Positions 8,000 through 61,437 are shown, counted from the first letter of the stretch. The stretch is DNA of 64,000 nt from Callorhinchus milii (GCF_018977255.1 NW_024704755.1:17794001-17858000), one strand, 5' to 3'. Numbers and translations: made by a program. The notes: a model not told the origin generated them from the letters alone.

Positions 8000-8024
8000 N
8001 NNNNNNNNNNNNNNNNNNNNNNNN
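8000..8024. other. Assembly gap (25 N)
   Basis: Run of n bases. Confidence 1.
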
Positions 8025-11250: not shown

Positions 11251-11344
11251 GGCGACAGTCTCACTAAACTAGATGGGAGAGTAAGCTCTGAGAATGATGC
11301 AAAAAGACTGCAATGGGATATAGATAGGCTATGGGAGTGGGCGA

Positions 11345-14300: not shown

Positions 14301-17300
14301 TAAAATTCTTCAGGGGGAAGGGGAACATCCAGAAGTGGTGTTCCAGGTTGGGATCCATGATATTGGTAAAAAAAAGGGCTGAGATCCAAAATATCAAAAG
14401 CTGGGGAACAAACTAAAGAATAGAACATCCAAGGTGGTGATCTCTGGATTACTCCCTGTGCCTCGGGCAAATAACTACCATAATGGCAGGATCAAGCATA
14501 TGAATGCTTGGCTGGAGTAATGGTGCAGAAAAGAGGGCTTCAGATTTCTGGATCATTGGGACCAGTTCTGGGGCAGGTGGGACTTGTACCATATGGATGG
14601 GTTGCACCTAAACAGCGCTGGGGCGAATGTACTTGCAGACAGGATAACTAATGCTGTTGGAGAGGGTTTAAACTAGTTTTGAGGGGGGAAGGGAATGCAA
14701 AAAATGAAGAGCTAGAAAATAGAGAAATAAAATGGGGGAAGTGCAGAACAGGTCAAGTCGGTCTTGGAGTGCATGTGCCTAAATGCACGGAGTTTAGCAA
14801 ACAAGATTGGTGAGCTGCAGCTCAAGTGGTCACGGGGATACGATGTAGTAGCAGTAACAGAGACTTGGCTCAAACAAGGACAGGAATGGGAGCTGAATAT
14901 TCCTGGGGACAATGTATTCAGGAGGGATAGGGAAAGAAAAAAAGGAGGGGCTGTGGCAATGTTAATCAAGGATACGGTTATAGCCGTGGAAAGGGTCGAG
15001 GTGCTGGAGGGCCCCAAAACGGAATCTATCTGGTTAGAGTTAAGGAACAAAAAAGGAGCTGTTACGCTGGTCGGGGTAAACTATAGACCACCAAATAGTG
15101 GGAAGGAAATACATGAGTAGATCTGCAAGCAGATCACAGGTAGACACAAGGCCAATAGAGTCATGATAATGGGGGACTTTAATTATCCCAACATAGACTG
15201 GCAAAACAACAGCGCAAAGGGCAAGGAGGGGAAAGATTCCTAAAATGCCTACAGGACAACTTTCTTGATCAGTACGTTTCCAGCCCAACGAGGAAGGAAG
15301 CAGTGCTAGATCTAGTTCTGGGGAATGAAGTAGGGCAAGTGGAGCAGGTTTCAGTGGGAGAACATCTGGGCAATAGTGATCACAACATCATTAGATTCAG
15401 AGTGCATATGGAAAGGACAAGGAACCATCTAAGGTGAAGATACTCAACTGGAAGAGGGCAAATTTCAGTGAGTTAAAAAAGGACCTAGCCAAAGTGGACT
15501 GGAAAGAAAGATTGGCAGGTAAAACAACTAAAGAGCAGTGGGAAGTCTTCAAGGATGAGATAGCTCGGGGACAGAATAAATACATTCCCACAAAAGGGAA
15601 AAGTAGGGCTTCCAAACCTCCCTGGATGACGAAGGTAATTGTATCTAGAATGAAGCAGAAAAAGGAGGCGTATGACAAATGTCAAACCCAAGATACAGAA
15701 GACAACCAAATAGAATATAGGAAGTGCAGAAGAGGTTTGAAAAAGGAAATAAGAGGCGGCAAAAGATTATATGAAAAAAGGTTAGCGGGTAACATTGAAG
15801 GGAATTCTAAAATATTTTACAAACACATCAAGAAAAAAAGGTTAGTCAAAGGTAGGGTGGGGCTGATTAAGGACCAAGGGGGCAATCTTATTGTGGAGGC
15901 AGAGGCCATGGCTGATGTGCTGACTGAGGACTTTGCATCTGTCTTCACAAAAGAAGTGGATGCACCAAATGCCGCAGTATCGGAGGAGAGGGCAGAGGAA
16001 ATGGATAGGATAAGTATAAACAGAGAGGAAGTACTGAAAAGGTTGACTGGGCTGAAGGTGATAAGTCGCCCGGTCCGGACGGGATGCAGCCAAGGTTACC
16101 ATGGGAGGGACGGGTACAAATAGCGGAGGCTTTGGCCACAATTTTTCAATCTTCGTTGGACACAGGAGTGGTGCCCGAGGACTGGAGAGTGGCCAATGTG
16201 ACTCCCTATACAAAAAGGGGCAGAAGGACAAACCTGGGAACTCCAGGCCAGTCAGCCAAACATCAGGAGTGGGGAAACTCCTGGAGACTATAATCCGGGA
16301 CAGAATAAATCTTCACTTAGAAGAATATGGGTTAATTAGGGACAGCCGCACCGATTTGTTAAAGGCAGATCTTGTCTAACAAATGTCTAACGAATTTTTC
16401 GATGAGGTAACGGAGAGGGTGGATAAAGGTAGTCCAGTTGATGTAGTTTATATGGACTTTCAAAAGGCATTTGACAAAGTGCCACATGAAAGACTTGTAA
16501 GAAAGATAGAAGCCCATGGTATAAAAGGGACAGTGGCAGCGGATCCAGAACGGGCCGGGAGACAAGTAGGGTGGGACCGATTAAGGACCAAGAGGGAAAT
16601 CTTACTATGGAGGCAGAGGCCATGGCTGATGTGCTGAATAAGGACTTTGCATCTGTCTTCACAAAAGAAGTGGATGCACCAAATGCCGCAGTATCGGAGG
16701 AGAGGGCAGAGGAAATGGATAGAGTTGTGGTGAACGGCTGCTTTACTGACTGGAGGGAAGTGTACAGTGGTGTCCCCCAGGGATCGGTATTTGGACCACT
16801 GCTCTTCTTAATATACACAAATGATCTGGACTTGGGTATAGCAAGTACCATTTCCAAGTTTGCGGACGACACAAAGTTAGGGAGGGGGTAAACAGTGAGA
16901 AGGAGAGGAGCCGACTGCAGGAGGACACAGACAGAATGATAAAATGGGCGACACATGGCAAATGAGTTTCAATGTGGAGAAAAGCGAAGTAATGCATTTT
17001 GGTAGAAAGAATGAGAGGCGGCAATATAGGCGGTAATACAACCTTAAGGAGAGTGAAGGAACAGAGAGACCTGGGGGATCAGGTAAATGAATCCTTGCAG
17101 GTGGTAGGACAGGGAGATAACGCTGTCAAAAGGGCATATGGAATACTAGGTTTTATAAATAGTGGCATAGAGTACAAGAGTCAGGAGGTGATGATTAACC
17201 GATATAAAACACTGGTTAGGCCTCAGTTAGAATACTGCGCCCAGTTCTGGGCACCGCACTATAGGAAGGATGTTAAGGCATTGGAAAGGGTACAGAGGAG

Positions 17301-17775
17301 ATTTACGAGGATGGTACCAGGAATGAGGGGCCGTGATGATGAGGAAAGGCTGGAGAGGTTAGGATTATTCTCATTGGAGCAGAGAAGGTGACGAGGACCT
17401 AATAGAGCTCTTCAAAATCATGAGGGGATTTGATAGGTTAGAAAGGGAAAAACTGTTCCCACTGGTGGGTGCGTCGGTGACTCGAGGTCACAGATTCCAA
17501 ATAGTCTCTAAAAGAAGCCGAGGGGAGGGGAGAAGAAATTTTTTCACGCAGCGAGTTGTTGGAATCTGGAACGCATTGTCTGAAAGGGCGGTCGAGGCCG
17601 ATTCGATAACTACTTTTAAAAACGCGGTGGACGGGTATTTGAGGAGGACGGGTTTGCAGGTTATGGGGAAAGGGCCGGGGAGTGGGATTGACATTACATT
17701 GCTCTATTCAAAGAGCCGCACAGACTCGATGGGCCGAATGGCCTCTTTTTGTGCTGTACGATTCTATGATTCTAT
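11345..17775 (+). mobile_element. Near full-length decayed CR1 LINE (ORF1 with CxxC and SGNH-esterase motifs; ORF2 endonuclease and RT) carrying a nested L2
   Basis: KCKDCDMWEL...FICSEC near 11530; KVVISGLLPVP...DGLHLN at ~14430-14620; CLNARSLANK...TETW...YRPP at 14764-15120; [13 protein letters not shown]; [10 protein letters not shown]...FADD (16859-16870); ttctatgattctat tail at ~17762-17775. Contains an internal duplication at ~16545-16720. Confidence 0.85.
12178..14280 (+). mobile_element. 5'-truncated young L2 LINE inserted into CR1 ORF1
   Basis: RT motifs [37 protein letters not shown] and YADD (13196-13207, after a frameshift). Ends in a (gtt)n tail at ~14260-14280. Confidence 0.92.
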
Positions 17776-17789
17776 GTCTGCAGATGACA

Positions 17790-18515
17790 TCACTGAGAGT
17801 GAGCATGTAGATGAGGAAACCAAGGTGGCCAAAGATGGCGCCTTGGGCTACCCTACAGGTGATTGGGCGGGGGCGGGAGGAAACACCATTTGCCAAGATG
17901 TATTGTTGGTGGTTTGTTAAATAGGACTCGAACCATGCAAGTGCGGTCCCACTAAGGTGAATCAGGGAGTAGAGGCAGTGGAGGAGGATGGCGTGACATG
18001 GTGGAGAAGGTCCAAGAGAACAAGGAAGCAGATGGAGCCCTGGTCGCAGAGAGAGTGGAAGTAATTTGTTATTTGATGAGCGCTGTCTCTGTGCTGTGAG
18101 CAGGGCGACTGGAAGGGTTCAAGTAGGCAGTGGAGGGCAAGGTGTGAAAGAAGTTGATTTGCAACCATGCATTTCAAAACTTTGGCCAGGAAGGGCAGGT
18201 GAGATAGGTCTGAAGTTTGTGAAGTTGGAGGCATCAAGGGTAGGTTCTTTTAGGAGAGGACTGATGACAGCAGTTTTGATGGGGAGTGGGACAGAGCCTG
18301 AGGAGAGGGACTGGTTGTTTGTTTCAACAGTGGGCAGAGGAGGGGGAGTTAAGTCAACAGAAGATGGGTGGGGAGGAAATCGAGGCAGCACGGGGGTAAA
18401 GGAACATAGGGTGGGGGCCGTGCTAGTAGCCGCGTTGGAGGAGAGGTTGATGAAGGATGCATGGAGGGTAGCCAAGGGAGGAGACAGCCAGGCGGATGTT
18501 GTATCACCTCTGAGG
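17790..18515 (-). mobile_element. Old L2 RT fragment (mirrored at ~57000-57725)
   Basis: SLSSGSVPLPIKTAVISPLLKEPTLDASNFTNFRPIS translation. Confidence 0.7.
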
Positions 18516-18790
18516 CAGAAGGTTGTGGATTCAAGAACACATTCTGTTGACCAAAAATAAGTTTCAAAACCTTATCCAAACATATACACTGTAGCATTGC
18601 AGAATTGGTTTATTACTTGTACATCAATGCAGTTTGTTAATTAATAATACAGTAGTAAAACTCGCAGGAGTCTGATCCGGATAAATCATATAATGGCCTA
18701 ACTTATACATCCACGAAGTCGCATTGAATTTCCTATTAAATCCACTTTAATTTATCTGTGCTAGTCATATTAACAATCATATTAACAAGT

Positions 18791-18794
<4 letters not shown>

Positions 18795-18821
<27 letters not shown>
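18795..18821. repeat. (TA)n microsatellite (mirror at 56694-56720)
   Basis: Direct reading. Confidence 0.95.
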
Positions 18822-19228
18822 GGAGTCCTGTAGCTCAGTGGTTAGAGCACTCACTTTGCAAGTGAGAGACCTAGGTTTGATTTCTAGCAGGGCGAAACCT
18901 TGGGCAAGTTTCCTAACTCCACACACCTGATAATAAACCCTCAAAAAAACATAATAATTTGGTCATTTCAATCCACGACTGTTTGTGGGACACTGCTGTG
19001 CGCAATTGGCTGCCGCAGTTTGCCGACAAATATACAGTCAATTCACTTTACTTTGTAAACCATGCCATCGGCCAACCCCCTTCCCCTCCGCTCCCTTACC
19101 CCCCCATTTCAGCTCGGGTCTGAAATCTTGTTGTTGCTGTTGTTTACAGTCTATTCTGTGAAGCGCTTGGAGATGTCTAGAAGATGTGAAAAGCGCTATA
19201 TCAAATACAAGGATTATTATTATTATTA
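18821..19228 (+). mobile_element. SINE split by a short L2 3' fragment (mirror at ~56287-56694)
   Basis: SINE head and core to ~19050, an L2 3'-UTR-like piece to ~19145, then the SINE tail. Confidence 0.7.
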
Positions 19229-19647
19229 ATCGCACAACTCGTAACGCCTCTGCCACACTTGTTAATCCAGAATTTACCGGCTGCCAGGTCAAAACTTTGT
19301 TTCTCACATCTACCGCCCATGGAACACCACACATACGCGCCCCCTCCCCACTGCGTCCCGCGTCCCGGCTCTGGGCGCAGAATATCAATGTACAGCAGAC
19401 GAGGTTTTCAGCAGTCATGGCCTCAAGCAATGCCATCGTATATCGTTTTATGATTAAAAATCCCAACAAAGCAATCAAGGACTATTACATAATAATATAA
19501 TAATAATCGTGACATTTGATACTGTCTTATGTAAACTATATGATATATTTATTAAAAAAATTTCACCGAAGGAAAACTCTTACCTCAGGGTAGTTAATGG
19601 TAGGTTTGTAATTCTCCACTGAGACACACAAATACACACAGAGGAAA

Positions 19648-19868
19648 TGATAATAATAATAATAATAATCCTTGCATTTGATATAGCGCTTTTCGCCTCG
19701 GGAGGACGTCCCAAAGCGCTTTACAGAACACACTGTAAATTTAAAGTGGGTTGACTGTATATGTGTGGGCGAACGCGGCGGCCGATTGCGCACAGCAATG
19801 TCCCACAAACAGTCGCAGATTGAAAATGACCAATTTATTATTGTTTTTGGTTTTGGAGGGATTATTAT
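19648..19868 (-). mobile_element. 5'-truncated SINE (mirror at 55647-55867)
   Basis: Core and tail of the family in reverse orientation. Confidence 0.8.
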
Positions 19869-22099
19869 GGGCGCCACATGTACACCAAGGCGAGCACCGA
19901 GCACAGGCGTGTAACATTGTTTAGTCACAACTCGATAAGAGATTTCTGTTTAAACTTCTTGTTTGAGTAAACTTTGGAACTCGCTGTCATCTTATGCTTC
20001 AAATGAAAATATTAGTATATATTTTTGCTCCATAGTATCAAAAACATTTGCTTTGAATCCTTGTATTTAACTTGGTATTTAAATTGGTTTTGCTTTGCAT
20101 ATTGTCCCCGTAGGTGACGCTGTGGAAACTCACCCTGTTATTTAGACTGCGATTTGTATTTATATTCAGATCAGTTTACTTGCACATTGGTCTTTTGGAA
20201 ACTGTCATGAGCTCTCTGTTTGCCTAATGCAGCTGCCAATCACTATGTTGTCCCCTTTAACTGGTATCAGATCAGATATTCTTCACCTGAAGTTGTGAAG
20301 ATGTTCAGGCAAAATGAGAAACCCAGCAATTTCGTACCATTCAATATATTTAAAGACAATCGCAACTGCACGTTGACACCGCACTGCACATTGCCAATGC
20401 ACAGAAAGTGACCACAGATGCGTAATCTTTGAATCTCACTAAATCTCTGAACCCGCGACTGTGGGGTTTGCAAACCAACCACCGGCGCAGCACTGTGGGG
20501 AATGGGTTCAATTTACAAACTAGATTTTCGAAAAATACTGCGGGGAAGTCATTTGCCCCAAATCTCACACATTTACACGATAGCAGAACAATTTAATTCC
20601 CATTTGGCACCAGGAAATCTGGTTATACTTTCCCAGCAGCGGCCTGAAGATTATTTATGTCCGAATCAGTAGGAACCTCGGGAGCACAGGGGGAGCTGCG
20701 GGTGGCAATGAGCACAGCTCAGTCACACTCAATATGTGAGGCGCAGTGCGAGGAGCCCCGACCCTGAGAGGGTACCTGGTGGGCAAACAGCGCGGGGGGT
20801 GGGGGCACTGACAGGGAATACAGCAGTGCAGGGAATCGTTCAGTAACACGATGTGTATGTGCCCCGAGTGCCGCTGTGGCAATTTAACCCAAACACTCCC
20901 AATAGATCGAGAGGAAAATAGTCTCAAAGAAATAAACGAGAGGGGTTTGTGGGAGAGGGTTGAGAATGAGACTTCAGAAGCTTTTGGTTTCCTGAGTCCA
21001 GTTACCAACTCAGCACTCAAACACAGTCCCAGTTTCTGAGCTAACACACAACACGGGACATATGTGACATTTATAATGTCAGAGTTTACTATCAACATCA
21101 TCCTCACATGAACTCCACAACTAACAGAGCAGTATAGCGAGTGGGTCCATCCACACAGCAGCACACCAGGCGCTCCTCAGCCACACAGTTGGGAAGTGTG
21201 AGCTCCTATTGCCCATCGCTGCTGAGTTGGCTGTTTCTGGTCGGGATTTGGGGGGAGAAGAAAATGAGCCTCAGTTCCCGCTCTGGTCAGGTTTGAAATG
21301 TTTGAAATGTGCTTTCCACTTGGGAGAAAGTCTCCGAGGCGTCAGAGTGTGTTTGCTGTTTGTGGAGTGAGGGCGCGCTGTGGGCGAGGTGAAGGCAGAT
21401 CAATGTGGCAGCACATGGCTCCTGGTCACACACCAGCCATTGGCCTTGGGCCGGCGGCCAAGGCTTGGGAACCCTCCCGTCAATGGGGAACACGTTGTCT
21501 TCGCTCTAATTCATGTGAGTCTTTCCAACAATGTCAATGTGCAGCACACGAGGCGCCGTTACACACTGTCACAGCACAGCTTGAGATACCCATAGCCCAC
21601 TCCACACTGTAGCTGTGTTTGTGGCTGTAGCGGACGGTACCAGCGCTCAGTGTGGTGTGAGCTCTTACAGTAAGTGCTCCCATCAGTTCAGAAGAGTTAG
21701 ATTAGCGACTGACCACAGACATTGTGGTTGGATTTTCGAAGATTGAATAGGCACAACGAAAGTGCAAATTGACACCAACAGTTAGTCCAAAGATTCGGCA
21801 GGATTTCTCCCTATTTCAGGAAGCCTCATCTCTGCCTCTGTCTCTGAGCTGTCCATTCCCCAATTTTTATCCTGGGCACATCCAACAGGCCTGATCTGTC
21901 CCCACTGCAGCTCCCTGTCCTGTCCAGCCGGGCAGGTCCTTCCCACATCTCACTTCTCCGTATCTGCTGAAAGATAACCTCAGCAAATCATATCTTCTCA
22001 CACGGACATGTAATAAGACCACCATCGGTTATGGAATCATAGAATTATACAGCACAGAAGGATGCCATCCTCTTCTGATCATCCTCTCTGTGTAAAGGT

Positions 22100-22620
22100 C
22101 TATCCCATGTGCTGTTATACACAACTCTGCAGCTAGTATCCTCTCCCACACTGAGCTCCGTGACCCCATCATTCCCCATTCTCGCCCGGCTCCACTGGCT
22201 CCCCGTTCCCCAGAGGGTAGCGTTTAAGATTCTCATCCTCACCTCTAAAGCCTTCCACGGTCTTTCTCCTTCCAACCTCTGTGACCTACTAAACATTACT
22301 GACCTGTCTGCTCCCTCCGCTCGGTGGTCTCTGACCGGACCACCCCATCATCAGTGGTCAGGCCTTGAGACATTCTGCCCCTGCACTTTAACCCACCCAC
22401 CCTCTCCCTCCCTCCCTTACCTCCTTCAAAGTCCGTCTCAAGAGCTTCCTCTTCGACAGCACCTTCAGTCATCTTTCCACCCCCTTGCCCTCCACCGCAC
22501 TTGACTTCAACCCCCAGCTTGGACTGTCCAACGCTGTGGGACATCCTCGCAATGTGAAAGGCGCTGTATAACCGCAATGTGTTGTTGCGCTCTCATATGA
22601 AAGTAAGTTGTTGTTGTTGA
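22100..22620 (+). mobile_element. L2 3' fragment (mirror at ~52895-53415)
   Basis: LARLHWLPVPQRVAFKILILT translation and an L2-type tail. Confidence 0.75.
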
Positions 22621-22725
22621 AACTCAAGTGTCGGCACGTGATGCTGAACGTCATTGTCCGTTTCCAATTGCTCTGGTGCTAACTCCAATCCCTAATCTGC
22701 CCCCAGGTCCCTGACACAGCTCCCC

Positions 22726-22780
22726 ATGGCTGCCACATGTGTCCCTCACTGCCTGTTGCTGCTGGGGGCTATTCACACAG
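22726..22780 (+). CDS. Gene A exon: signal peptide [18 protein letters not shown]
   Basis: ccccATGg start, hydrophobic core, phase-1 donor ag|gtaatc. Confidence 0.8.
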
Positions 22781-25700
22781 GTAATCTGCTCATTCCTCAC
22801 TCACACCATTGCTGCTCATTTCTCCCCAGCCCTGTAGTCGGTGTTGAATGTCGCTCTCTGTTTCCCGCACGTGTTTGGTTGAGCTTATAGCAGTTGTTTG
22901 GTCTTTGGTCGCTTGTGTTGCACACACATGGTTTTCTGTTTTGGCAGCGGCTGGCGGGACCTCACTGACTGTGGGTCAAAACCCTCGGGTCGCCACAGTG
23001 AGCAGAGGCGGAGAAGTTACCATTTACTGCTTTTGGCCACTCTATAAAGATCAGAAACCAGCAAAGGTGGACTGGTGGCGAGAAGGAGAAAATCGTTCCC
23101 TGGAGGACGGCAGAGATGGAAGGATCCAGATTTATTTCCTAAACAGAGCAAGTTGTGCATTGCAGCTGTTCTCAGCCAGACTGCAGGACGCGGGAGTGTA
23201 CCGCTGCCGAGTGAGACACAGAAGCGGAGCGCAGGGCCCTGGCACACGGCTGCTGGTGTTCGGTGAGTAGCCGCAGTGACAGTCGAGGCGGCGGGTTAGG
23301 TTTTTTTCGGGTTTTAATAAAGTTATAATAAAATATATTTTGTATTTTGCAACTTTCACCCAAACAATGTTCTTATATTTGGTTACAATTGTCCGTTATA
23401 CATTTTGCTACATACAAACAATTATTATTGCGAAGTAAAATGGGACCAAATTCCCGTTTAAACACTATGGAAATGTTACAGAAATAAGTATGTTTCAATG
23501 GACACCAATCACACAGCTCATGCAATCCTCTAACATGAACTTTAAATGACTGAGAGCCTATCGCTGTGTGACCAGAGAGCCAGCTTCGGGTGGTGAGCCA
23601 GCTTTGTATGAGTCTCATCGTAAAAGAAAGAACTAATATAGTTTATATTGCTGGTTAATGTGAATAACTGTTCTGTCTGTCTTACACATCTTCTTTGTAA
23701 GGGGTTGGTTCCAAAATAATGAGAGCCCTGTTGTCGATTCATATTTAGATATGCTTAACATGTAAATACTTTATTGACTGTGACATATCATGAAGCAATA
23801 ACCATAAGCTTTTCTGAAGGCTTGTTCTCACCCTCAATTGTTTTATCAATTCAGTACGTGACCAACGTGGTTCACATTCAAACAGTAAGAGATGAAGACA
23901 ACGAGCATAGTTGTGGGTTTAGATAATTACTGGCCGGCAATACTCCAAATAAAATTGCTCTTTCGTGGCTGTTTGTGGAACATTGCTGGGGCGATTAGTT
24001 GCCACTTTCACCTACAAAACACAGTCACTGCACTTTAAAGTGAATCGTGTGAAGCACTTTGAGGCGTTCTCCCAATGCCAAAGATGCTTTATCAGATACA
24101 AGGATTACTATTTATTATAAATTATTTAGTTATAGATTCTCTATTATTGGAATGCAGTAAATAGAGGATATACTGTAGAATGCAGTGTTGCTCATACATT
24201 GACCAAACGAATGACCTATTTGGGGGGATTGTTGGCCAGGACACCAGAGAGAGAAACTCTCGTCTCATTTTGATGGGATCTTTAACATCCACCCGAAAGT
24301 CCGATAGGACCTTGGTTTAATGTCTCATCTGAAGGACAGTCCTCCGACCGTGTAGCACTCCCCCAGCGCTTCATTTGAGTGTCAGTTTAGACGATGTGAG
24401 TTCAAGACGTGGGGCTTGAACCCACAACCTTCAGAGGCGAGAGCGCTACCACTGGGCTAGGCTGACATGACGGACTTGGGTCCTGGACGGATGCCTTGGA
24501 ATCCTCACATTCCTCCAAAGTAAATCGAAGGAGTCGATTAGTATTAATGAATGTCTGAGAAAATAAAAATGTAATTTAGCCAGAAGTTAATGTTCATTGG
24601 TGTCGAGCTTTCATTAAAATTTCCAGTATTTGGTTGTTTTAATCTTAGAGGGAAGGGAAGTGTGTCAGCCTGTATCAGCAAACTGGTAGCACTGCTGTAT
24701 AATATTAATCCTTGCACTTGTTGTAGCACGTTTCATGACGGGAAGAAATCCCAAAGTGCTTCTCAGGGTATAATGATAACAATATTGCATTTGATATAGC
24801 TCCTGATCACGTCGTTGAGACGTCTCAACGCACTTCATTGTAAAGTGGGGTAACTTTGTGTTTTTTAGGCAAACGTGGCAGTCAGTTTGCACACAGCAAT
24901 GTCTCACAAACAGTACGAAGTGGGGGGCAATTTTTATGAAGTGATTGTTGTCCAGGACACCGGGAGAGATAAAGCACCCTCTCCTTTTCGAGTTGTGCCG
25001 CGGGATCGATCAGAGCATTAATGAGCGTCTGTAACAAACAGTCAGTGTCCAGGTTCCGCTCTGATCTTTCCTTTGGCGGTGATGAAGGAACACATGTCAA
25101 TGTTGCACGTGGCTTGTTCTCCCCCAATGTACTACTGTTCCCCGGGTTTGAATGTTGCATCTTGTAAATTCTGCACAAAGTGATGTTGAGAATTGCTGAT
25201 GAATATCTAACATTTTGAACATTTTTAATCGTATAAAATTGGACGGTAAATTGGCGACAGTTTAAAACAATGAAATCCAAGGTTCTTTATGTGGGCCATT
25301 CAATAAAAAACAAATAGGTAATTCTAAAATAATGTAAATCATTTATTAGGCCACAGGTATGTGTCCAGTTAGGAACTATGTCAGGGTATAGAGAAGTATA
25401 GGACAGACCAGGGAAGTAATGTTCAACTGGAACAGGAAGCTGAGAGAAGCTGTTCAGAACTCTTAAGGTGTTTGAGAAGTTAAATAGGGAGAAACTATTT
25501 CCACTGGTTATTTCTATTAATTCTTCCAAATGAACGCTGCCTCCCCCCACCCCTGCCCTCGGAAATCCATCCTGGAGTCCTCTGTTCTCCCTCGGTGCAC
25601 TGCATTTTGCCCAGCCGGGTGTCTGACACATGCAGAAACCCATAACTAAGCTTAAAAGTGTCCAAACCAAACGGAGAATTCCGTGCATCCCACCTACATA

Positions 25701-36597: not shown

Positions 36598-37034
36598 ACT
36601 GTACACCAATCTTTGCTATAATCACTCCAAAGAGCTGTTCATTGTTAAATCACACTCTGTGATTATGGACTTGTGGAGATATCATTTCACATCAAAGTTA
36701 AAATAGAGAATACATTTTGATTCTGTCATCAATCTGCGCTGATAACAATCAATATCTTTTTAGCAACACCAAATGACAAAAGGCATTTAAAGTTACTGTT
36801 AGAATTTCCCTTTTTTACCAAGTAATTAGAGCTTCTGTGCAATAACCTGTCGTGTCGCTGTATAACCAATCGCTATTAAGGAAGTGAGGGCATGAGGCGA
36901 AATCCGCTGATTTTTATAAACACAATATTTTTTNCAAATGTCAAGGCTGTTACTTACCAAATATCTTCTAGCCCTGTGAGGCTAAGAAGGAAGTAGATTG
37001 TGTGATTATCCTTTTTTTGAATCCAGCATATAAT

Positions 37035-37040
37035 AATAAA
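37035..37040 (+). terminator. Candidate polyadenylation signal for gene A
   Basis: AATAAA about 440 nt after the stop codon; unverified. Confidence 0.3.
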
Positions 37041-39030: not shown

Positions 39031-39099
39031 CTATTTTTTTGAATGAGGCAGATTCAGAACAGCGTAATTTAACCTGTTCTCATCTGTTCCCGTCTGCAC
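39031..39099 (-). CDS. Gene B terminal coding exon VQTGTDENRLNYAVLNLPHSKK* (ITIM LNYAVL)
   Basis: cattgttttccag acceptor; aligns with the gene A ITIM exons. Confidence 0.75.
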   Translation of the reverse strand: MQTGTDENRLNYAVLNLPHSKK

Positions 39100-48000: not shown

Positions 48001-51000
48001 AAAATCCCCAAACTAAGCTCCGAGGATAAAGGTTCCTTTTCAGCCAAGGATCCGACATGATCATCAGCTGTAATTCTACTAACAATTGATAACAATAATC
48101 TTGGCATTTGATACATTATGGTACATTTACAGCTCTTTCAAGATTTTTAAAAAAATGAACAAGAATACATTTTCAAACAATGTTCCAAATGACTAATTCT
48201 AATGGGATAAAGCATACTTTGAAGAATTATAACATTGCACTATGTGTTATATTATTATTACACATGTTTAATCTCATCTTTATAATCTTCATCATTTTCT
48301 ATTCCATCGAATTTAACATAATTGTTAAATTCTTATTTTTAACTTATGTTTGCTAACTTATTAATAATAAGCTAACTTATTTTTAGCTTATGTTTGGTGT
48401 AAATGAAACCAAAGTTACAATAGCTACCAGGCCATATTTGTTTAATATATCATCCGTCCTCAAAGCTGTGTCCGCAGTTATCTTACCTGTCTCAGTGCCA
48501 GGGACAGTGTAGCTGATGTTGGCGGCAGTGGGGAGGGACAGGTGAGATACGTGACAGGTATAAACAGCTCCGCTCTGCACCGCCTCTGTCTCGATCAATA
48601 AACTGGAAGCTTCATACAGCCCCGCGAGGTTCCTGTTTGTATTTGTTCCACTTACAATTTCTGATCCATTTTTACACCAAGTGATATTCACATCCTCCGG
48701 GTAAAAGGCCGCCGTTTTACACACGAGGGTCAGAGAAGCCGCAGCTCCGCTCCCGGACCGTGAGACCACCATCTCCAGGGGGGTCGGGGGCACTTGGGAT
48801 AGAAACAGAAACACATGTTGCATTTACACAGGTGGCAATATATAAATATAACCCAAGTTTATAATGCGAGTCCTGAAAGTTAGATAAGATTGACTCTGTA
48901 AAAGCAGAGTAAACCCAGCCTCCTGTGATTTAATAATCACATCGAACTAGTTACTGCTGCAAACCAGGTGATATTGTTACCCTCAATCCTGAATATACTT
49001 TAAACGTTTGCACAATGTGTGCGTTTTAAATGAAAAACTCCTAAAATTATGTTATATGTTTCATCTTGAAATATCAGCATTGCTTATCAGTATCAGGCCC
49101 CATGTTCTCCCCCCTCCCCATCCCAGGGCTCAGATCCACTCAGTAAATCCCTGTAAATATCTGCAACTATTATTGTGCAACTTCACCCTCTTGTACTTGG
49201 TATATTTGTTGCCGCCCTAAATAACGGATAAAGGGAAATACTCTGTTCACCCTGGAAAGTAAACACTGTATTTTACAAATCCAACAATATATCTATTGAT
49301 ATAGGCTGTTCTGAAGCAGGGGTAAGCGGGGTCTTCCTGGGGCTGAACTGGCTCCAAGGTGACATGTTTGGCAGCGAAATGTCAAATTCAAGCCAAACCT
49401 CCGTGGAGGGCTGTAGTCCTGTTCCTGAGCCAGGCGGGTCTGCAGTATTCCAGGGCATTGGTGATGACAGCACAGCCCGGCCTGGCTCATTGGCACGGCT
49501 TGGAAGGGCCAAATAGTCACTGGGGGCAGGAAGTTATCCCACTCAGCCCGTTAATGCTGCAGCCAAAGCCCTAACGGGTAGGTAGGGTGGTTCTAGCTGG
49601 ATAAGCAGCAGGAAAGCTTGTCAGACAGTGATATCAATGGCGAGCTGTGTGGGTTTAGCTGGTTAGACTCCAGCAGCATCGCAACTCACAATCAAGATTC
49701 CGACATTGGCTTTAATCAGCCCACACCTGACAAAATACTACTGCAAGTTGGTAAACAGGTTACATCCCACAAAGAGAGAGAGAGCTTTCGACACCAATAC
49801 GTGTAAATCTCCATATGTAGGTGGGATGCACGGAATTCTCCGTTTGGTTTGGACACTTTTAAGCTTAGTTATGGGTTTCTGCATGTGTCAGACACCCGGC
49901 TGGGCAAAATGCAGTGCACCGAGGGAGAACAGAGGACTCCAGGATGGATTTCCGAGGGCAGGGGTGGGGGGAGGCAGCGTTCATTTGGAAGAATTAATAG
50001 AAATAACCAGTGGAAATAGTTTCTCCCTATTTAACTTCTCAAACACCTTAAGAGTTCTGAACAGCTTCTCTCAGCTTCCTGTTCCAGTTGAACATTACTT
50101 CCCTGGTCTGTCCTATACTTCTCTATACCCTGACATAGTTCCTAACTGGACACATACCTGTGGCCTAATAAATGATTTACATTATTTTAGAATTACCTAT
50201 TTGTTTTTTATTGAATGGCCCACATAAAGAACCTTGGATTTCATTGTTTTAAACTGTCGCCAATTTACCGTCCAATTTTATACGATTAAAAATGTTCAAA
50301 ATGTTAGATATTCATCAGCAATTCTCAACATCACTTTGTGCAGAATTTACAAGATGCAACATTCAAACCCGGGGAACAGTAGTACATTGGGGGGAGAACA
50401 AGCCACGTGCAACATTGACATGTGTTCCTTCATCACCGCCAAAGGAAAGATCAGAGCGGAACCTGGACACTGACTGTTTGTTACAGACGCTCATTAATGC
50501 TCTGATCGATCCCGCGGCACAACTCGAAAAGGAGAGGGTGTTTTATCTCTCCCGGTGTCCTGGACAACAATCACTTCATAAAAATTGCCCCCCACTTCGT
50601 ACTGTTTGTGAGACATTGCTGTGTGCAAACTGACTGCCACGTTTGCCTAAAAAACACAAAGTTACCCCACTTTACAATGAAGTGCGTTGAGACGTCTCAA
50701 CGACGTGATCAGGAGCTATATCAAATGCAATATTGTTATCATTATACCCTGAGAAGCACTTTGGGATTTCTTCCCGTCATGAAACGTGCTACAACAAGTG
50801 CAAGGATTAATATTATACAGCAGTGCTACCAGTTTGCTGATACAGGCTGACACACTTCCCTTCCCTCTAAGATTAAAACAACCAAATACTGGAAATTTTA
50901 ATGAAAGCTCGACACCAATGAACATTAACTTCTGGCTAAATTACATTTTTATTTTCTCAGACATTCATTAATACTAATCGACTCCTTCGATTTACTTTGG

Positions 51001-52789
51001 AGGAATGTGAGGATTCCAAGGCATCCGTCCAGGACCCAAGTCCGTCATGTCAGCCTAGCCCAGTGGTAGCGCTCTCGCCTCTGAAGGTTGTGGGTTCAAG
51101 CCCCACGTCTTGAACTCACATCGTCTAAACTGACACTCAAATGAAGCGCTGGGGGAGTGCTACACGGTCGGAGGACTGTCCTTCAGATGAGACATTAAAC
51201 CAAGGTCCTATCGGACTTTCGGGTGGATGTTAAAGATCCCATCAAAATGAGACGAGAGTTTCTCTCTCTGGTGTCCTGGCCAACAATCCCCCCAAATAGG
51301 TCATTCGTTTGGTCAATGTATGAGCAACACTGCATTCTACAGTATATCCTCTATTTACTGCATTCCAATAATAGAGAATCTATAACTAAATAATTTATAA
51401 TAAATAGTAATCCTTGTATCTGATAAAGCATCTTTGGCATTGGGAGAACGCCTCAAAGTGCTTCACACGATTCACTTTAAAGTGCAGTGACTGTGTTTTG
51501 TAGGTGAAAGTGGCAACTAATCGCCCCAGCAATGTTCCACAAACAGCCACGAAAGAGCAATTTTATTTGGAGTATTGCCGGCCAGTAATTATCTAAACCC
51601 ACAACTATGCTCGTTGTCTTCATCTCTTACTGTTTGAATGTGAACCACGTTGGTCACGTACTGAATTGATAAAACAATTGAGGGTGAGAACAAGCCTTCA
51701 GAAAAGCTTATGGTTATTGCTTCATGATATGTCACAGTCAATAAAGTATTTACATGTTAAGCATATCTAAATATGAATCGACAACAGGGCTCTCATTATT
51801 TTGGAACCAACCCCTTACAAAGAAGATGTGTAAGACAGACAGAACAGTTATTCACATTAACCAGCAATATAAACTATATTAGTTCTTTCTTTTACGATGA
51901 GACTCATACAAAGCTGGCTCACCACCCGAAGCTGGCTCTCTGGTCACACAGCGATAGGCTCTCAGTCATTTAAAGTTCATGTTAGAGGATTGCATGAGCT
52001 GTGTGATTGGTGTCCATTGAAACATACTTATTTCTGTAACATTTCCATAGTGTTTAAACGGGAATTTGGTCCCATTTTACTTCGCAATAATAATTGTTTG
52101 TATGTAGCAAAATGTATAACGGACAATTGTAACCAAATATAAGAACATTGTTTGGGTGAAAGTTGCAAAATACAAAATATATTTTATTATAACTTTATTA
52201 AAACCCGAAAAAAACCTAACCCGCCGCCTCGACTGTCACTGCGGCTACTCACCGAACACCAGCAGCCGTGTGCCAGGGCCCTGCGCTCCGCTTCTGTGTC
52301 TCACTCGGCAGCGGTACACTCCCGCGTCCTGCAGTCTGGCTGAGAACAGCTGCAATGCACAACTTGCTCTGTTTAGGAAATAAATCTGGATCCTTCCATC
52401 TCTGCCGTCCTCCAGGGAACGATTTTCTCCTTCTCGCCACCAGTCCACCTTTGCTGGTTTCTGATCTTTATAGAGTGGCCAAAAGCAGTAAATGGTAACT
52501 TCTCCGCCTCTGCTCACTGTGGCGACCCGAGGGTTTTGACCCACAGTCAGTGAGGTCCCGCCAGCCGTTGCCAAAACAGAAAACCATGTGTGTGCAACAC
52601 AAGCGACCAAAGACCAAACAACTGCTATAAGCTCAACCAAACACGTGCGGGAAACAGAGAGCGACATTCAACACCGACTACAGGGCTGGGGAGAAATGAG
52701 CAGCAATGGTGTGAGTGAGGAATGAGCAGATTACCTGTGTGAATAGCCCCCAGCAGCAACAGGCAGTGAGGGACACATGTGGCAGCCAT
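39031..52789 (-). CDS. Gene B: paralogous VJ-C1-TM receptor with a different TM and tail; V-exon acceptor mutated (possible pseudogene or V-less isoform)
   Basis: Exons (-) 52789-52735, 52567-52253, 48792-48487, 47538-47446, 46591-46560, 46458-46432 and 39099-39031. Phases 1,1,1,1,0,0; ~298 aa if the V exon is included. Confidence 0.75.
39280..39835 (+). mobile_element. Old L2 3' fragments
   Basis: RILT...PILTRLHWL-like text and a gccttcagccactatgccccgaggctctggaactcc segment. Confidence 0.55.
39835..41135. repeat. C-rich minisatellite built from ggctcctccccc(c/a) units
   Basis: About 1.3 kb of a degenerate 11-20 bp unit. The Pro- and Gly-rich ORFs here are artefacts of the repeat. Confidence 0.92.
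41325..41720 (-). repeat. CR1 3' end with an expanded ~24 bp minisatellite (accccactcccccactctctccccaca); resumes at 45281-45375
   Basis: Reverse CR1 terminus (aatcagaattatacagcacagaacgaggcc), then the tandem unit related to 10915-11250. Confidence 0.85.
41720..45280 (+). mobile_element. Near full-length young L2 LINE: intact APE endonuclease, RT with ~137 bp deletion, 3' UTR and (gtt)n tail
   Basis: Open frame 41875-44265 with LQNVRSL, ALTETW, GGGVAL, LYRPP, ILGDFN, LDLVI, SDH, then RT motifs. The GVPQG..YADD segment is missing at 44236/44237. Confidence 0.93.
45520..45990. mobile_element. L2 fragments in mixed orientation
   Basis: VLFDPELSFLPHIR (-) and AIHSLAPSYLSDLL...FKAGLKT (+). Confidence 0.65.
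46432..46458 (-). CDS. Gene B 27-nt micro-exon LDYDGMEYM
   Basis: ctccattgttgaag acceptor and atg|gtaatt donor, phase 0-0. Confidence 0.6.
46560..46591 (-). CDS. Gene B cytoplasmic exon 1 (ATEGNIQGEQQ)
   Basis: tgtgcttctctgcag acceptor and cag|gtatac donor, phase 1-0. Confidence 0.7.
47446..47538 (-). CDS. Gene B transmembrane exon DHLVLICSVVGLINSLGIIIIMLCVKVKQSK
   Basis: ataattttgcag acceptor and g|gtgaaa donor, 93 nt, phase 1-1; hydrophobic helix followed by basic residues. Confidence 0.82.
47655..47880. repeat. Degenerate (GT/AT)n low-complexity tract
   Basis: Direct reading. Confidence 0.7.
48487..48792 (-). CDS. Gene B C1-set exon (identical to gene A but 12 nt shorter)
   Basis: Same translation up to PGTET, then donor g|gtaaga. 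Confidence 0.9.
52253..52567 (-). CDS. Gene B VJ exon with non-canonical (AA) acceptor
   Basis: Coding sequence matches gene A; the preceding intron ends ttttggcaa instead of ttttggcag. Confidence 0.75.
52735..52789 (-). CDS. Gene B signal-peptide exon
   Basis: Mirror of 22726-22780. Confidence 0.78.
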
Positions 52790-55700
52790 GGGGAGCTGTG
52801 TCAGGGACCTGGGGGCAGATTAGGGATTGGAGTTAGCACCAGAGCAATTGGAAACGGACAATGACGTTCAGCATCACGTGCCGACACTTGAGTTTCAACA
52901 ACAACAACTTACTTTCATATGAGAGCGCAACAACACATTGCGGTTATACAGCGCCTTTCACATTGCGAGGATGTCCCACAGCGTTGGACAGTCCAAGCTG
53001 GGGGTTGAAGTCAAGTGCGGTGGAGGGCAAGGGGGTGGAAAGATGACTGAAGGTGCTGTCGAAGAGGAAGCTCTTGAGACGGACTTTGAAGGAGGTAAGG
53101 GAGGGAGGGAGAGGGTGGGTGGGTTAAAGTGCAGGGGCAGAATGTCTCAAGGCCTGACCACTGATGATGGGGTGGTCCGGTCAGAGACCACCGAGCGGAG
53201 GGAGCAGACAGGTCAGTAATGTTTAGTAGGTCACAGAGGTTGGAAGGAGAAAGACCGTGGAAGGCTTTAGAGGTGAGGATGAGAATCTTAAACGCTACCC
53301 TCTGGGGAACGGGGAGCCAGTGGAGCCGGGCGAGAATGGGGAATGATGGGGTCACGGAGCTCAGTGTGGGAGAGGATACTAGCTGCAGAGTTGTGTATAA
53401 CAGCACATGGGATAGACCTTTACACAGAGAGGATGATCAGAAGAGGATGGCATCCTTCTGTGCTGTATAATTCTATGATTCCATAACCGATGGTGGTCTT
53501 ATTACATGTCCGTGTGAGAAGATATGATTTGCTGAGGTTATCTTTCAGCAGATACGGAGAAGTGAGATGTGGGAAGGACCTGCCCGGCTGGACAGGACAG
53601 GGAGCTGCAGTGGGGACAGATCAGGCCTGTTGGATGTGCCCAGGATAAAAATTGGGGAATGGACAGCTCAGAGACAGAGGCAGAGATGAGGCTTCCTGAA
53701 ATAGGGAGAAATCCTGCCGAATCTTTGGACTAACTGTTGGTGTCAATTTGCACTTTCGTTGTGCCTATTCAATCTTCGAAAATCCAACCACAATGTCTGT
53801 GGTCAGTCGCTAATCTAACTCTTCTGAACTGATGGGAGCACTTACTGTAAGAGCTCACACCACACTGAGCGCTGGTACCGTCCGCTACAGCCACAAACAC
53901 AGCTACAGTGTGGAGTGGGCTATGGGTATCTCAAGCTGTGCTGTGACAGTGTGTAACGGCGCCTCGTGTGCTGCACATTGACATTGTTGGAAAGACTCAC
54001 ATGAATTAGAGCGAAGACAACGTGTTCCCCATTGACGGGAGGGTTCCCAAGCCTTGGCCGCCGGCCCAAGGCCAATGGCTGGTGTGTGACCAGGAGCCAT
54101 GTGCTGCCACATTGATCTGCCTTCACCTCGCCCACAGCGCGCCCTCACTCCACAAACAGCAAACACACTCTGACGCCTCGGAGACTTTCTCCCAAGTGGA
54201 AAGCACATTTCAAACATTTCAAACCTGACCAGAGCGGGAACTGAGGCTCATTTTCTTCTCCCCCCAAATCCCGACCAGAAACAGCCAACTCAGCAGCGAT
54301 GGGCAATAGGAGCTCACACTTCCCAACTGTGTGGCTGAGGAGCGCCTGGTGTGCTGCTGTGTGGATGGACCCACTCGCTATACTGCTCTGTTAGTTGTGG
54401 AGTTCATGTGAGGATGATGTTGATAGTAAACTCTGACATTATAAATGTCACATATGTCCCGTGTTGTGTGTTAGCTCAGAAACTGGGACTGTGTTTGAGT
54501 GCTGAGTTGGTAACTGGACTCAGGAAACCAAAAGCTTCTGAAGTCTCATTCTCAACCCTCTCCCACAAACCCCTCTCGTTTATTTCTTTGAGACTATTTT
54601 CCTCTCGATCTATTGGGAGTGTTTGGGTTAAATTGCCACAGCGGCACTCGGGGCACATACACATCGTGTTACTGAACGATTCCCTGCACTGCTGTATTCC
54701 CTGTCAGTGCCCCCACCCCCCGCGCTGTTTGCCCACCAGGTACCCTCTCAGGGTCGGGGCTCCTCGCACTGCGCCTCACATATTGAGTGTGACTGAGCTG
54801 TGCTCATTGCCACCCGCAGCTCCCCCTGTGCTCCCGAGGTTCCTACTGATTCGGACATAAATAATCTTCAGGCCGCTGCTGGGAAAGTATAACCAGATTT
54901 CCTGGTGCCAAATGGGAATTAAATTGTTCTGCTATCGTGTAAATGTGTGAGATTTGGGGCAAATGACTTCCCCGCAGTATTTTTCGAAAATCTAGTTTGT
55001 AAATTGAACCCATTCCCCACAGTGCTGCGCCGGTGGTTGGTTTGCAAACCCCACAGTCGCGGGTTCAGAGATTTAGTGAGATTCAAAGATTACGCATCTG
55101 TGGTCACTTTCTGTGCATTGGCAATGTGCAGTGCGGTGTCAACGTGCAGTTGCGATTGTCTTTAAATATATTGAATGGTACGAAATTGCTGGGTTTCTCA
55201 TTTTGCCTGAACATCTTCACAACTTCAGGTGAAGAATATCTGATCTGATACCAGTTAAAGGGGACAACATAGTGATTGGCAGCTGCATTAGGCAAACAGA
55301 GAGCTCATGACAGTTTCCAAAAGACCAATGTGCAAGTAAACTGATCTGAATATAAATACAAATCGCAGTCTAAATAACAGGGTGAGTTTCCACAGCGTCA
55401 CCTACGGGGACAATATGCAAAGCAAAACCAATTTAAATACCAAGTTAAATACAAGGATTCAAAGCAAATGTTTTTGATACTATGGAGCAAAAATATATAC
55501 TAATATTTTCATTTGAAGCATAAGATGACAGCGAGTTCCAAAGTTTACTCAAACAAGAAGTTTAAACAGAAATCTCTTATCGAGTTGTGACTAAACAATG
55601 TTACACGCCTGTGCTCGGTGCTCGCCTTGGTGTACATGTGGCGCCCATAATAATCCCTCCAAAACCAAAAACAATAATAAATTGGTCATTTTCAATCTGC

Positions 55701-56693
55701 GACTGTTTGTGGGACATTGCTGTGCGCAATCGGCCGCCGCGTTCGCCCACACATATACAGTCAACCCACTTTAAATTTACAGTGTGTTCTGTAAAGCGCT
55801 TTGGGACGTCCTCCCGAGGCGAAAAGCGCTATATCAAATGCAAGGATTATTATTATTATTATTATCATTTCCTCTGTGTGTATTTGTGTGTCTCAGTGGA
55901 GAATTACAAACCTACCATTAACTACCCTGAGGTAAGAGTTTTCCTTCGGTGAAATTTTTTTAATAAATATATCATATAGTTTACATAAGACAGTATCAAA
56001 TGTCACGATTATTATTATATTATTATGTAATAGTCCTTGATTGCTTTGTTGGGATTTTTAATCATAAAACGATATACGATGGCATTGCTTGAGGCCATGA
56101 CTGCTGAAAACCTCGTCTGCTGTACATTGATATTCTGCGCCCAGAGCCGGGACGCGGGACGCAGTGGGGAGGGGGCGCGTATGTGTGGTGTTCCATGGGC
56201 GGTAGATGTGAGAAACAAAGTTTTGACCTGGCAGCCGGTAAATTCTGGATTAACAAGTGTGGCAGAGGCGTTACGAGTTGTGCGATTAATAATAATAATA
56301 ATCCTTGTATTTGATATAGCGCTTTTCACATCTTCTAGACATCTCCAAGCGCTTCACAGAATAGACTGTAAACAACAGCAACAACAAGATTTCAGACCCG
56401 AGCTGAAATGGGGGGGTAAGGGAGCGGAGGGGAAGGGGGTTGGCCGATGGCATGGTTTACAAAGTAAAGTGAATTGACTGTATATTTGTCGGCAAACTGC
56501 GGCAGCCAATTGCGCACAGCAGTGTCCCACAAACAGTCGTGGATTGAAATGACCAAATTATTATGTTTTTTTGAGGGTTTATTATCAGGTGTGTGGAGTT
56601 AGGAAACTTGCCCAAGGTTTCGCCCTGCTAGAAATCAAACCTAGGTCTCTCACTTGCAAAGTGAGTGCTCTAACCACTGAGCTACAGGACTCC

Positions 56694-56724
<31 letters not shown>

Positions 56725-58244
56725 ACTTGTTAATATGATTGTTAATATGACTAGCACAGATAAATTAAAGTGGATTTAATAGGAAATTCAATGCGACTTC
56801 GTGGATGTATAAGTTAGGCCATTATATGATTTATCCGGATCAGACTCCTGCGAGTTTTACTACTGTATTATTAATTAACAAACTGCATTGATGTACAAGT
56901 AATAAACCAATTCTGCAATGCTACAGTGTATATGTTTGGATAAGGTTTTGAAACTTATTTTTGGTCAACAGAATGTGTTCTTGAATCCACAACCTTCTGC
57001 CTCAGAGGTGATACAACATCCGCCTGGCTGTCTCCTCCCTTGGCTACCCTCCATGCATCCTTCATCAACCTCTCCTCCAACGCGGCTACTAGCACGGCCC
57101 CCACCCTATGTTCCTTTACCCCCGTGCTGCCTCGATTTCCTCCCCACCCATCTTCTGTTGACTTAACTCCCCCTCCTCTGCCCACTGTTGAAACAAACAA
57201 CCAGTCCCTCTCCTCAGGCTCTGTCCCACTCCCCATCAAAACTGCTGTCATCAGTCCTCTCCTAAAAGAACCTACCCTTGATGCCTCCAACTTCACAAAC
57301 TTCAGACCTATCTCACCTGCCCTTCCTGGCCAAAGTTTTGAAATGCATGGTTGCAAATCAACTTCTTTCACACCTTGCCCTCCACTGCCTACTTGAACCC
57401 TTCCAGTCGCCCTGCTCACAGCACAGAGACAGCGCTCATCAAATAACAAATTACTTCCACTCTCTCTGCGACCAGGGCTCCATCTGCTTCCTTGTTCTCT
57501 TGGACCTTCTCCACCATGTCACGCCATCCTCCTCCACTGCCTCTACTCCCTGATTCACCTTAGTGGGACCGCACTTGCATGGTTCGAGTCCTATTTAACA
57601 AACCACCAACAATACATCTTGGCAAATGGTGTTTCCTCCCGCCCCCGCCCAATCACCTGTAGGGTAGCCCAAGGCGCCATCTTTGGCCACCTTGGTTTCC
57701 TCATCTACATGCTCACTCTCAGTGATGTCATCTGCAGACATAGAATCATAGAATCGTACAGCACAAAAAGAGGCCATTCGGCCCATCAAGTCTGTGCGGC
57801 TCTTTGAATAGAGCAATGTAATGTCAATCCCACTCCCCGGCCCTTTCCCCATAACCTGCAAACCCGTCCTCCTCAAATACCCGTCCACCGCGTTTTTAAA
57901 AGTAGTTATCGAATCGGCCTCGACCGCCCTTTCAGACAATGCGTTCCAGATTCCAACAACTCGCTGCGTGAAAAAATTTCTTCTCCCCTCCCCTCGGCTT
58001 CTTTTAGAGACTATTTGGAATCTGTGACCTCGAGTCACCGACGCACCCACCAGTGGGAACAGTTTTTCCCTTTCTAACCTATCAAATCCTCTCATGATTT
58101 TGAAGAGCTCTATTAGGTCCTCGTCACCTTCTCTGCTCCAATGAGAATAATCCTAACCTCTCCAGCCTTTCCTCATCATCACGGCCCCTCATTCCTGGTA
58201 CCATCCTCGTAAATCCCCTCTGTACCCTTTTCAATGCCTTAACA

Positions 58245-61150: not shown

Positions 61151-61164
61151 GAGGCAGGTGAGTA

Positions 61165-61437
61165 CACTTGATTTGGATACACTCGCTGCAGATGAAGTTG
61201 CCCGGGCTCAGGGCCCTCATTAACTCCCACATGTCACAGTCCTTGCATTTCACTTGCCATCATCTTCTCACACAGTGTTTTCAATATATATATTTTTTCT
61301 TTTTGTTTTTTTGTTTTAATTTGCCGTCAGTGTTGTAGTTTCTGACAGTTCCTTGTTTGTCGATGTTTGTCCCTGGTTCTGCTGTTGAAAAACTTTTTCT
61401 TTTTTTTGTCGCTCTGACAGTAGCTTACCTCAGCCTC
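61165..61437 (-). mobile_element. CR1 5' end / start of ORF1, homologous to 11345-11590
   Basis: MKCKDCDMWELMRALSPGNFICSEC; the reverse complement matches 11345-11590. Confidence 0.8.

Follow-up and report, generated by a model that had tools for sequence, protein, structure and literature searches.

The window analysed here is a 64-kb stretch of genomic DNA from the cartilaginous fish Callorhinchus milii (GCA_018977255.1 MU249845.1:17,794,001-17,858,000). It contains two convergent receptor genes, gene A on the plus strand and gene B on the minus strand, whose 5′ halves form the near-identical arms of an inverted repeat. Both genes have an antigen-receptor-like ectodomain composed of a V domain with a J-like end and a C1 domain (VJ-C1). 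The explanation that probably holds for the locus as a whole is that A and B are two old convergent paralogues whose 5′ halves have been homogenised by recent interlocus gene conversion. Within the same explanation, gene A would be an inhibitory-type receptor consisting of V, C1, a transmembrane (TM) segment, and a tail with the motifs LSYETL, TIYSKV, LTYTAL, and TQYAEV, and it would also have secreted and short-tailed forms. Gene B would carry the same ectodomain on a different, uncharged TM segment with at most one immunoreceptor tyrosine-based inhibitory motif (ITIM), or would be soluble. As such, it would be a partner of truncated or decoy type, or else a copy in decay, and not an activating receptor. 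The pair would belong to a clustered VJ-C1-ITIM family confined to cartilaginous fishes.

Arm 1 (17271-27031, plus strand) comprises the 5′ half of gene A, with its upstream region, 5′ exon, leader, V and C1 exons, and introns, and arm 2 (48483-58244, minus strand) comprises the 5′ half of gene B. Across 9,759 bp, 17271-27028 and 58244-48486 are 99.93% identical in inverted orientation. A base-by-base comparison of the arms finds eight differences, of which seven are substitutions and one is a single-base indel. The outermost 460 bp contain four of the differences and another is 3 bp from the inner edge, while the central 9.3 kb has only three differing positions. One end of the tract is in a fragment of a long interspersed nuclear element (LINE), 5.4 kb upstream of the leader, and the other is at the C1 donor site, where the near-identity stops. 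The arms are free of N; elsewhere in the window, N occurs as a run of 25 (8000-8024) and as two single letters.

Outside arm 1, an older and diverged collinear homology is present at 11343-17270 (plus strand), which pairs with 61437-58245. This homology of the outer flanks continues for about 6 kb; in the 2.7 kb that can be aligned, indels are numerous and the identity averages 92.5%. A 469-bp LINE piece (16802-17270) occurs on the A side only and lies exactly at the outer arm edge; on the B side, the older homology passes directly into the arm. At the inner edge, the introns are about 80% alike for about 130 bp past the C1 donor, and have no similarity after that. The identity therefore falls sharply at the edges, from 99.93% to 92.5% outside and to 80% and then none inside, with older homology lying beyond. 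The divergence within the genes is discordant as well, since the 5′ exons are identical whereas the homologous 3′ exons (TM, cyt0, and cyt1) of A and B share only about 60% DNA identity. A and B are therefore old paralogues.

The arm identity is explained best by gene conversion, as the preliminary description of this DNA had proposed, because a 99.93% block lies between flanks of 92.5% and at most 80%, ends at breaks in homology, and has its differences clustered at the edges. As to direction and mechanism, a recent non-reciprocal exchange between the inverted copies would have replaced about 9.76 kb in one of the genes by the sequence of its partner. The conversion tract would have halted where homology breaks, at the 469-bp indel on the outside and at the loss of similarity on the inside.

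The leader, V, and C1 of genes A and B are identical in protein sequence. The RefSeq coding sequence (CDS) of gene A starts at 21513-21514 (plus strand), with a split AT|G codon with which a 5′ exon ends; the gene B copy of this exon is at 54002. The gene A leader exon (22707-22780, plus strand) has an ATG at 22726 and a phase-1 GT donor, and matches P0001, P0013, and P0015. It is followed by the V-set exon (22948-23262, plus strand), which ends in the J-like sequence GPGTRLLVF, and by the C1-set exon (26722-27039, plus strand). On the minus strand, gene B has a leader exon identical to that of gene A (52735-52808), a V exon (52253-52567), and a C1 exon (48487-48792). Pfam assigns the two Ig exons to V-set (E=4.5e-8) and C1-set (E=1.8e-12). 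The J-like motif is conserved across the family, and its position in the same exon as V makes this a non-rearranging VJ. The ectodomain has a single C1 exon between V and TM in A, B, and all relatives inspected. The C1 donors differ, as GTAAGC of gene A lies 12 nt downstream of GTAAGA of gene B, and the gene B C1 lacks GNST because its donor comes 12 nt earlier. Read-through of the C1 donor in gene A gives a secreted V-C1 form, which is represented by V9KKI2 and two Ensembl models.

The 3′ half of gene A lies in the spacer and consists of four exons on the plus strand. The uncharged TM exon (32257-32346, phase 1 to 1) is followed by the 38-nt cyt0 exon (33303-33340, phase 1 to 0). The cyt1 exon (34515-34631, phase 0) has a canonical CAG acceptor and contains LSYETL and TIYSKV, and the terminal exon cyt2 (36400-36597) contains LTYTAL and TQYAEV before the stop. 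When cyt0 is included, all junctions of the chain are canonical GT-AG, the phases agree, and the product has 376 aa; the cyt0|cyt1 junction reads …CAATCCGAG|ATCATACAAGG…. A model that splices TM straight onto cyt1, at a weak ACAAG|GA acceptor, was dropped, since the 38-nt cyt0 permits the canonical CAG acceptor. Exons cyt1 and cyt2 are internal repeats, in each of which a TxYxxV motif comes after an ITIM, and MAFFT places cyt2 onto the block of the first two tyrosines, Y1 and Y2. Shark paralogues have up to six or more such modules.

RefSeq lists two isoforms of gene A. In X1 (XP_042196457, 293 aa) the cyt0 donor is read through to a stop at 33385, and in X2 (XP_042196458, 272 aa) cyt0 is skipped, TM is joined to cyt1, and the frame shifts to DHTRSS*. 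Since both end early, the full-length ITIM isoform is a prediction from the genomic sequence. It is supported by a RefSeq gene of Mobula hypostoma with the same layout, namely TM, a 44-nt phase 1-to-0 exon, an exon with Y1 and Y2, and an exon with Y3 and Y4. The four tyrosine motifs of gene A align one-to-one with those of the ray proteins. The paralogue XP_007902825, from the same scaffold, is collinear with gene A through all four motifs at 36% identity, and a Heptranchias protein is collinear through them at 44%. The presence or absence of the 38-nt cyt0 switches the frame of cyt1 between a four-tyrosine ITIM tail and the six-residue tail DHTRSS*, and gene A can therefore give inhibitory and tail-less receptors. 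Inclusion or skipping of cyt0 would thus set whether the ITIM frame is read, and the phosphorylated tail would be expected to recruit SH2 phosphatases. Such a gene would have a compact switch, with one 38-nt exon choosing between an ITIM-bearing and a tail-less receptor.

Much of this anatomy was already proposed in the preliminary description, and its reading of the structure is largely right. The inverted arms with a shared upstream region, leader, V, and C1 in two convergent genes, the VJ-C1 character of the ectodomain, the two different TM exons of the spacer, and the four-tyrosine tail of gene A, which is of the ITIM and immunoreceptor tyrosine-based switch motif type, are all confirmed. 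The host was correctly taken to be a cartilaginous fish.

Gene B differs in its first coding exon and in its 3′ half. Its distal first coding exon (63256-63263, minus strand; ATGAAGAG|GT, encoding MK and the start of R) lies outside the arm, and an A-side counterpart of this exon was not found within the 64-kb window. The predicted TM exon (47446-47538, minus strand, phase 1 to 1; DHLVLICSVVGLINSLGIIIIMLCVKVKQSK) has no lysine or arginine in the membrane span, resembles the TM exon of the family, and is absent from the RefSeq model; the C1|TM junction reads …GAGACAG|ATCACTTAG…. The cyt0 exon (46560-46591, minus strand, phase 1 to 0) encodes ATEGNIQGEQQ and is the counterpart of gene A cyt0. 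The next intron measures 7.4 kb and is filled by a LINE and satellite arrays; beyond it, a relic ITIM exon (39031-39099, minus strand; VQTGTDENRLNYAVLNLPHSKK*) contains LNYAVL and then a stop. LNYAVL aligns with the first tyrosine motif (Y1) of gene A and of the ray genes. A chain of C1, TM, cyt0, and the LNYAVL exon gives a 289-aa protein with one ITIM. The sole RefSeq model of gene B (XP_042196369, 254 aa) instead omits the TM exon, splices C1 onto the exon at 46591, and continues past the cyt0 donor (…ATEGNIQGEQQVYALSYCTI*). This read-through ends in ...VYALSYCTI, with the stop ending at 46530, and its product is soluble and TM-less.

One of the eight arm differences is in a splice site. 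Position 22947 is G in arm 1 and the corresponding 52568 is A in arm 2, which turns the V-exon acceptor of gene B (dinucleotide 52569-52568) from AG to AA. Just upstream of the gene B V exon there are an in-frame cryptic acceptor, ATAG|CA (about 57 nt away, corresponding to A 22889 approximately), and an in-frame ATG (corresponding to A 22848). Judged from the sequence, either of them could bypass the AA site; loss of function in gene B is an equal possibility. That the A and B chains are expressed at full length is, like their signalling, a prediction from the exon structure.

Several points count against the explanation given above. The A and B chains are drawn from genomic sequence and database models; RefSeq lists no four-tyrosine isoform for gene A, as X1 and X2 both end early, and the TM and LNYAVL exons of gene B are in no database model. 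The AA acceptor may leave gene B non-functional. Exons, introns, and the 5 kb of DNA upstream are all covered evenly by the tract, and therefore nothing shows selection on the ectodomain specifically. Without an outgroup locus, conversion is not formally separable from a recent partial duplication, in which an inverted copy of the 5′ half of gene A landed beside an older 3′ half. Such an event would suit the length of the tract (9.76 kb), its even inclusion of non-coding DNA, and its start inside a LINE. However, collinear diverged homology continues past both edges, at 92.5% outside and 80% inside, and gene B retains its own homologues of TM, cyt0, and cyt1. With diverged homologues on both sides, full paralogues must predate the event, which is the signature of conversion, and for this reason a partial duplication is rather improbable. 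A false duplication of one real arm by the long-read assembly is very unlikely, because the arms differ at eight sites clustered near their edges, each is bordered on either side by diverged flanks of its own, and gene models from an older independent assembly have both the A-specific and the B-specific C1 3′ junction. The spacer also has two distinct homologous sets of 3′ exons facing each other. What speaks for such an artefact is that near-identical 10-kb repeats are prone to assembly errors, and that V9KKI2 and XP_007909686 join the distal 5′ exon of gene B to the 3′ end of gene A, so that the copies have been confused before.

The state of gene B leaves room for a second set of alternatives. 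It is possible, although doubtful, that gene B is simply a pseudogene or decaying copy, and that the locus comprises one working inhibitory gene and a relic refreshed at its 5′ end by conversion from A. The AA acceptor agrees with this, as do the LINE and satellite arrays in the 7.4-kb intron, the tail truncated past one ITIM (apparently through a frame difference in a run of A), and a RefSeq model that leaves out TM and terminates by reading into an intron. In contrast, RefSeq does hold a B-specific splice model joining C1 to the exon at 46591, all gene B exons have open frames, canonical sites, and compatible phases, the AA site could be bypassed through the upstream acceptor or ATG, and it is common for ray members of the family to be soluble or short-tailed. 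Far less credible is a true inhibitory/activating pair, with gene B signalling positively through YDGM (by way of p85) or through an adaptor. The same ectodomains do occur on different TM and tail exons, and the gene B TM has a polar asparagine, but lysine and arginine are absent from the TM of gene B and of every family member inspected, and the sole conserved tyrosine motif of gene B is an ITIM. The six tail motifs of the preliminary description are all at the places given there, and five are retained; the exon with YDGM (about 46452) is rejected as spurious, as it has no acceptor in a usable phase (1 or 0), abuts a dispersed repeat, is unannotated, and has no homologue.

The two genes have near-identical ectodomains, as in paired receptors. 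Opposite signalling was not found, since gene B has neither a charged TM residue nor coupling through an ITAM (a tyrosine-based activation motif of immunoreceptors) in the exons of the window or in the RefSeq model. The preliminary description had compared the differing signalling to SIGLEC5/14, and this is not supported, as gene B lacks a basic TM residue, an ITAM, and a usable YxxM exon. Its sole tyrosine exon, LNYAVL, is a truncated homologue of the first ITIM of A. An uncharged TM with at most one ITIM, or a soluble product, means that gene B is not activating, and the locus is not an inhibitory/activating pair.

Relatives of the two genes, for which an HMM search of cartilaginous fishes had been suggested, occur in rays, in sharks, and elsewhere in C. 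milii. A family profile search matches only cartilaginous-fish proteins (Callorhinchus, Mobula, Hemitrygon, Hypanus, Pristis, and Heterodontus). Their RefSeq names are inconsistent and include SIRPα-like, NCR3LG1-like, PD-L1-like, Igλ-like, MHC-IIα-like, TCRβ-like, and tapasin-related. A tail profile built from ray tails and the cyt1 exon of gene A was also searched against 1.84 billion proteins with HMMER. This tail-only search gives 23 matches, and every match inspected is a chondrichthyan protein that combines V, C1, and TM with several tyrosine motifs; bony-vertebrate SIRPα was not recovered among these 1.84 billion proteins. Word-indexed protein searches found no bony-vertebrate relatives beyond weak matches to Ig domains of the Kirrel or DSCAM type. 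At least four further C. milii paralogues are present on the same scaffold, at 15.2-15.8 Mb of MU249845.1. This cluster is dense, has neighbouring C1-set genes, and lies about 2 Mb from the inverted pair. Heptranchias and Heterodontus have clusters of their own, and sharks and rays have several paralogues on one chromosome.

When the ectodomain family profile is compared with the PDB, the best match is UrIg2 (9dmx, 9e-25), followed by antibody chains and SIRPα (2wng, 8e-20). SIRPα 2wng is the sole classical receptor among the top PDB matches that span V and C1 together, and Ig chains and UrIg2 outscore it. Searches of the PDB with each domain are non-specific, with V matching titin, NCAM, and PD-L1, and C1 matching Ig Cμ. 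An AlphaFold model (pLDDT 70) searched with Foldseek is likewise non-discriminating and matches generic V-C chains (TCRβ, Ig light chains, PD-L1, and butyrophilin).

Among known receptors, SIRPα and SIRPβ share with these genes a single-exon non-rearranging V with the J-like GxGTxLxV, a C1-set domain after it, a type I TM architecture, and short-tailed relatives. The SIRPα tail has four cytoplasmic tyrosines, arranged as two ITIM-type pairs. Gene A also has four tyrosines in ITIM-type motifs, which are kept in rays, sharks, and paralogues, and the match of its tail to the SIRPα type is at the motif level only; the RefSeq names are SIRP-like as well. On paper, gene A would thus resemble SIRPα in architecture, with VJ, C1, and four ITIM-type tyrosines. 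In contrast, SIRP has two C1 domains where only one is found here, and SIRPβ has a basic TM residue that couples to DAP12, a kind of residue that is absent from the TM of B and of the short-tailed relatives. Membership of these genes in the SIRP family is not established, because they have one C1 domain and not two, no partner with a basic TM, and no detectable homology in the tail; at the level of sequence, homology to SIRPα is not demonstrable.

The pairs SIGLEC5/14 and SIGLEC11/16 are neighbouring paralogues with homogenised 5′ and ligand-binding exons and differing TM and tail exons. The locus described here is similar in that the 5′ and ectodomain exons are homogenised while the TM and tail exons are kept different. 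The Siglec pairs have a sialic-acid-binding V domain with C2 domains and an activating DAP12-coupled partner, whereas the present genes are VJ-C1 and of ITIM or tail-less type, and the tract here is inverted and unusually long (9.76 kb). B7H6 (NCR3LG1) and PD-L1 also have a V and C ectodomain, and several family members are automatically named NCR3LG1-like or PD-L1-like; PD-L1 and butyrophilin are among the Foldseek fold matches. The B7 ligands are not known to have a J-like GxGTxLxVF or a multi-ITIM tail, and B7H6 is not among the top 60 PDB profile matches.

UrIg and UrIg2 resemble the pair in having a single-exon VJ followed by C1 in cartilaginous fishes, and gene conversion has been reported within UrIg2 (PMC12227049). 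Their C domains number three to nine, they are made mainly in liver as secreted or extracellular-matrix proteins, they lack a TM or ITIM tail, and they are reported only from elasmobranchs (PMC12227049). In contrast, the genes described here have one C1, a TM, and ITIMs, and are present in a holocephalan too. Membership in UrIg/UrIg2, considered in view of the top PDB match, was ruled out on this V-C1-TM-ITIM architecture. NITRs of ray-finned fishes are similar in that they form a clustered multigene family of non-rearranging V(J) type I receptors, among which are inhibitory as well as other forms (PMC7916673). They differ in having one or two V/I-type domains in place of C1, and are not reported from cartilaginous fishes. 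It is unlikely that the family represents a cartilaginous-fish sister lineage of SIRP, or a membrane-bound ITIM relic of a pre-RAG VJ-C1 lineage related to UrIg/UrIg2 and kept in holocephalans and elasmobranchs. If either were true, the inverted pair would represent live concerted evolution of the ligand-binding face of such a receptor.

The phenomenon itself is of a known kind. Mammals offer well-known examples of neighbouring immune-receptor paralogues whose ligand-binding exons are homogenised. The present locus is a clean and very recent case in a chimaera, which suggests that homogenisation of ectodomain exons operates at the base of jawed vertebrates. The more interesting lead is that the locus points to a sizeable VJ-C1-ITIM family of cartilaginous fishes, known only under inconsistent automatic names. 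This family bears on the origin of SIRP-type receptors and on the question of which non-rearranging VJ-C1 genes outlast the invasion of the RAG transposon.

The preliminary description did not recognise the locus as described. Both genes are in fact annotated, with isoforms in RefSeq, UniProt, and Ensembl under automatic names throughout; the claim stands in so far as a literature search found no paper on the inverted pair, the locus, or the wider receptor family. A protein search shows that the gene A exons are 100% identical to the 272-aa RefSeq "signal-regulatory protein beta-1-like isoform X2", and RefSeq gives genes A and B alike the automatic name "signal-regulatory protein beta-1-like". 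The RefSeq CDS ranges are 21513-34534 (plus strand) for gene A and 63263-46530 (minus strand) for gene B. Other entries comprise an older RefSeq model, XP_007909686 (295 aa), Ensembl-derived entries from an earlier assembly (240-264 aa), and the UniProt entry V9KKI2, "Tapasin-related protein-like" (245 aa), which appears to be of cDNA origin. V9KKI2 and XP_007909686 start with MKR, as does the distal exon of gene B, and end in A-specific 3′ sequence. This mixture could have arisen when a transcript or an assembly was reconstructed chimerically across the identical region, or else the A side may have its own copy of the MK exon, beyond the window or in the gap at 8000-8024.

The LINE of the 7.4-kb gene B intron (41857-44782, plus strand) is antisense to the gene and has an endonuclease and reverse transcriptase open reading frame of 802 aa. 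Fragments at 3646-4256, 12417-13019, and 59942-61166 are 92-95% alike, and this sequence similarity suggests fairly recent LINE activity. C-rich microsatellite arrays flank the LINE in the gene B intron at 39852-41133 (1.3 kb) and 41441-41722 (0.3 kb). Further G/T-rich and C-rich microsatellite-like arrays occur in the window, and the one at 8025-9685 (1.6 kb) adjoins the assembly gap. The intron between C1 and TM of gene A has a very regular tandem repeat of 24 bp in 19 copies (31310-31768).

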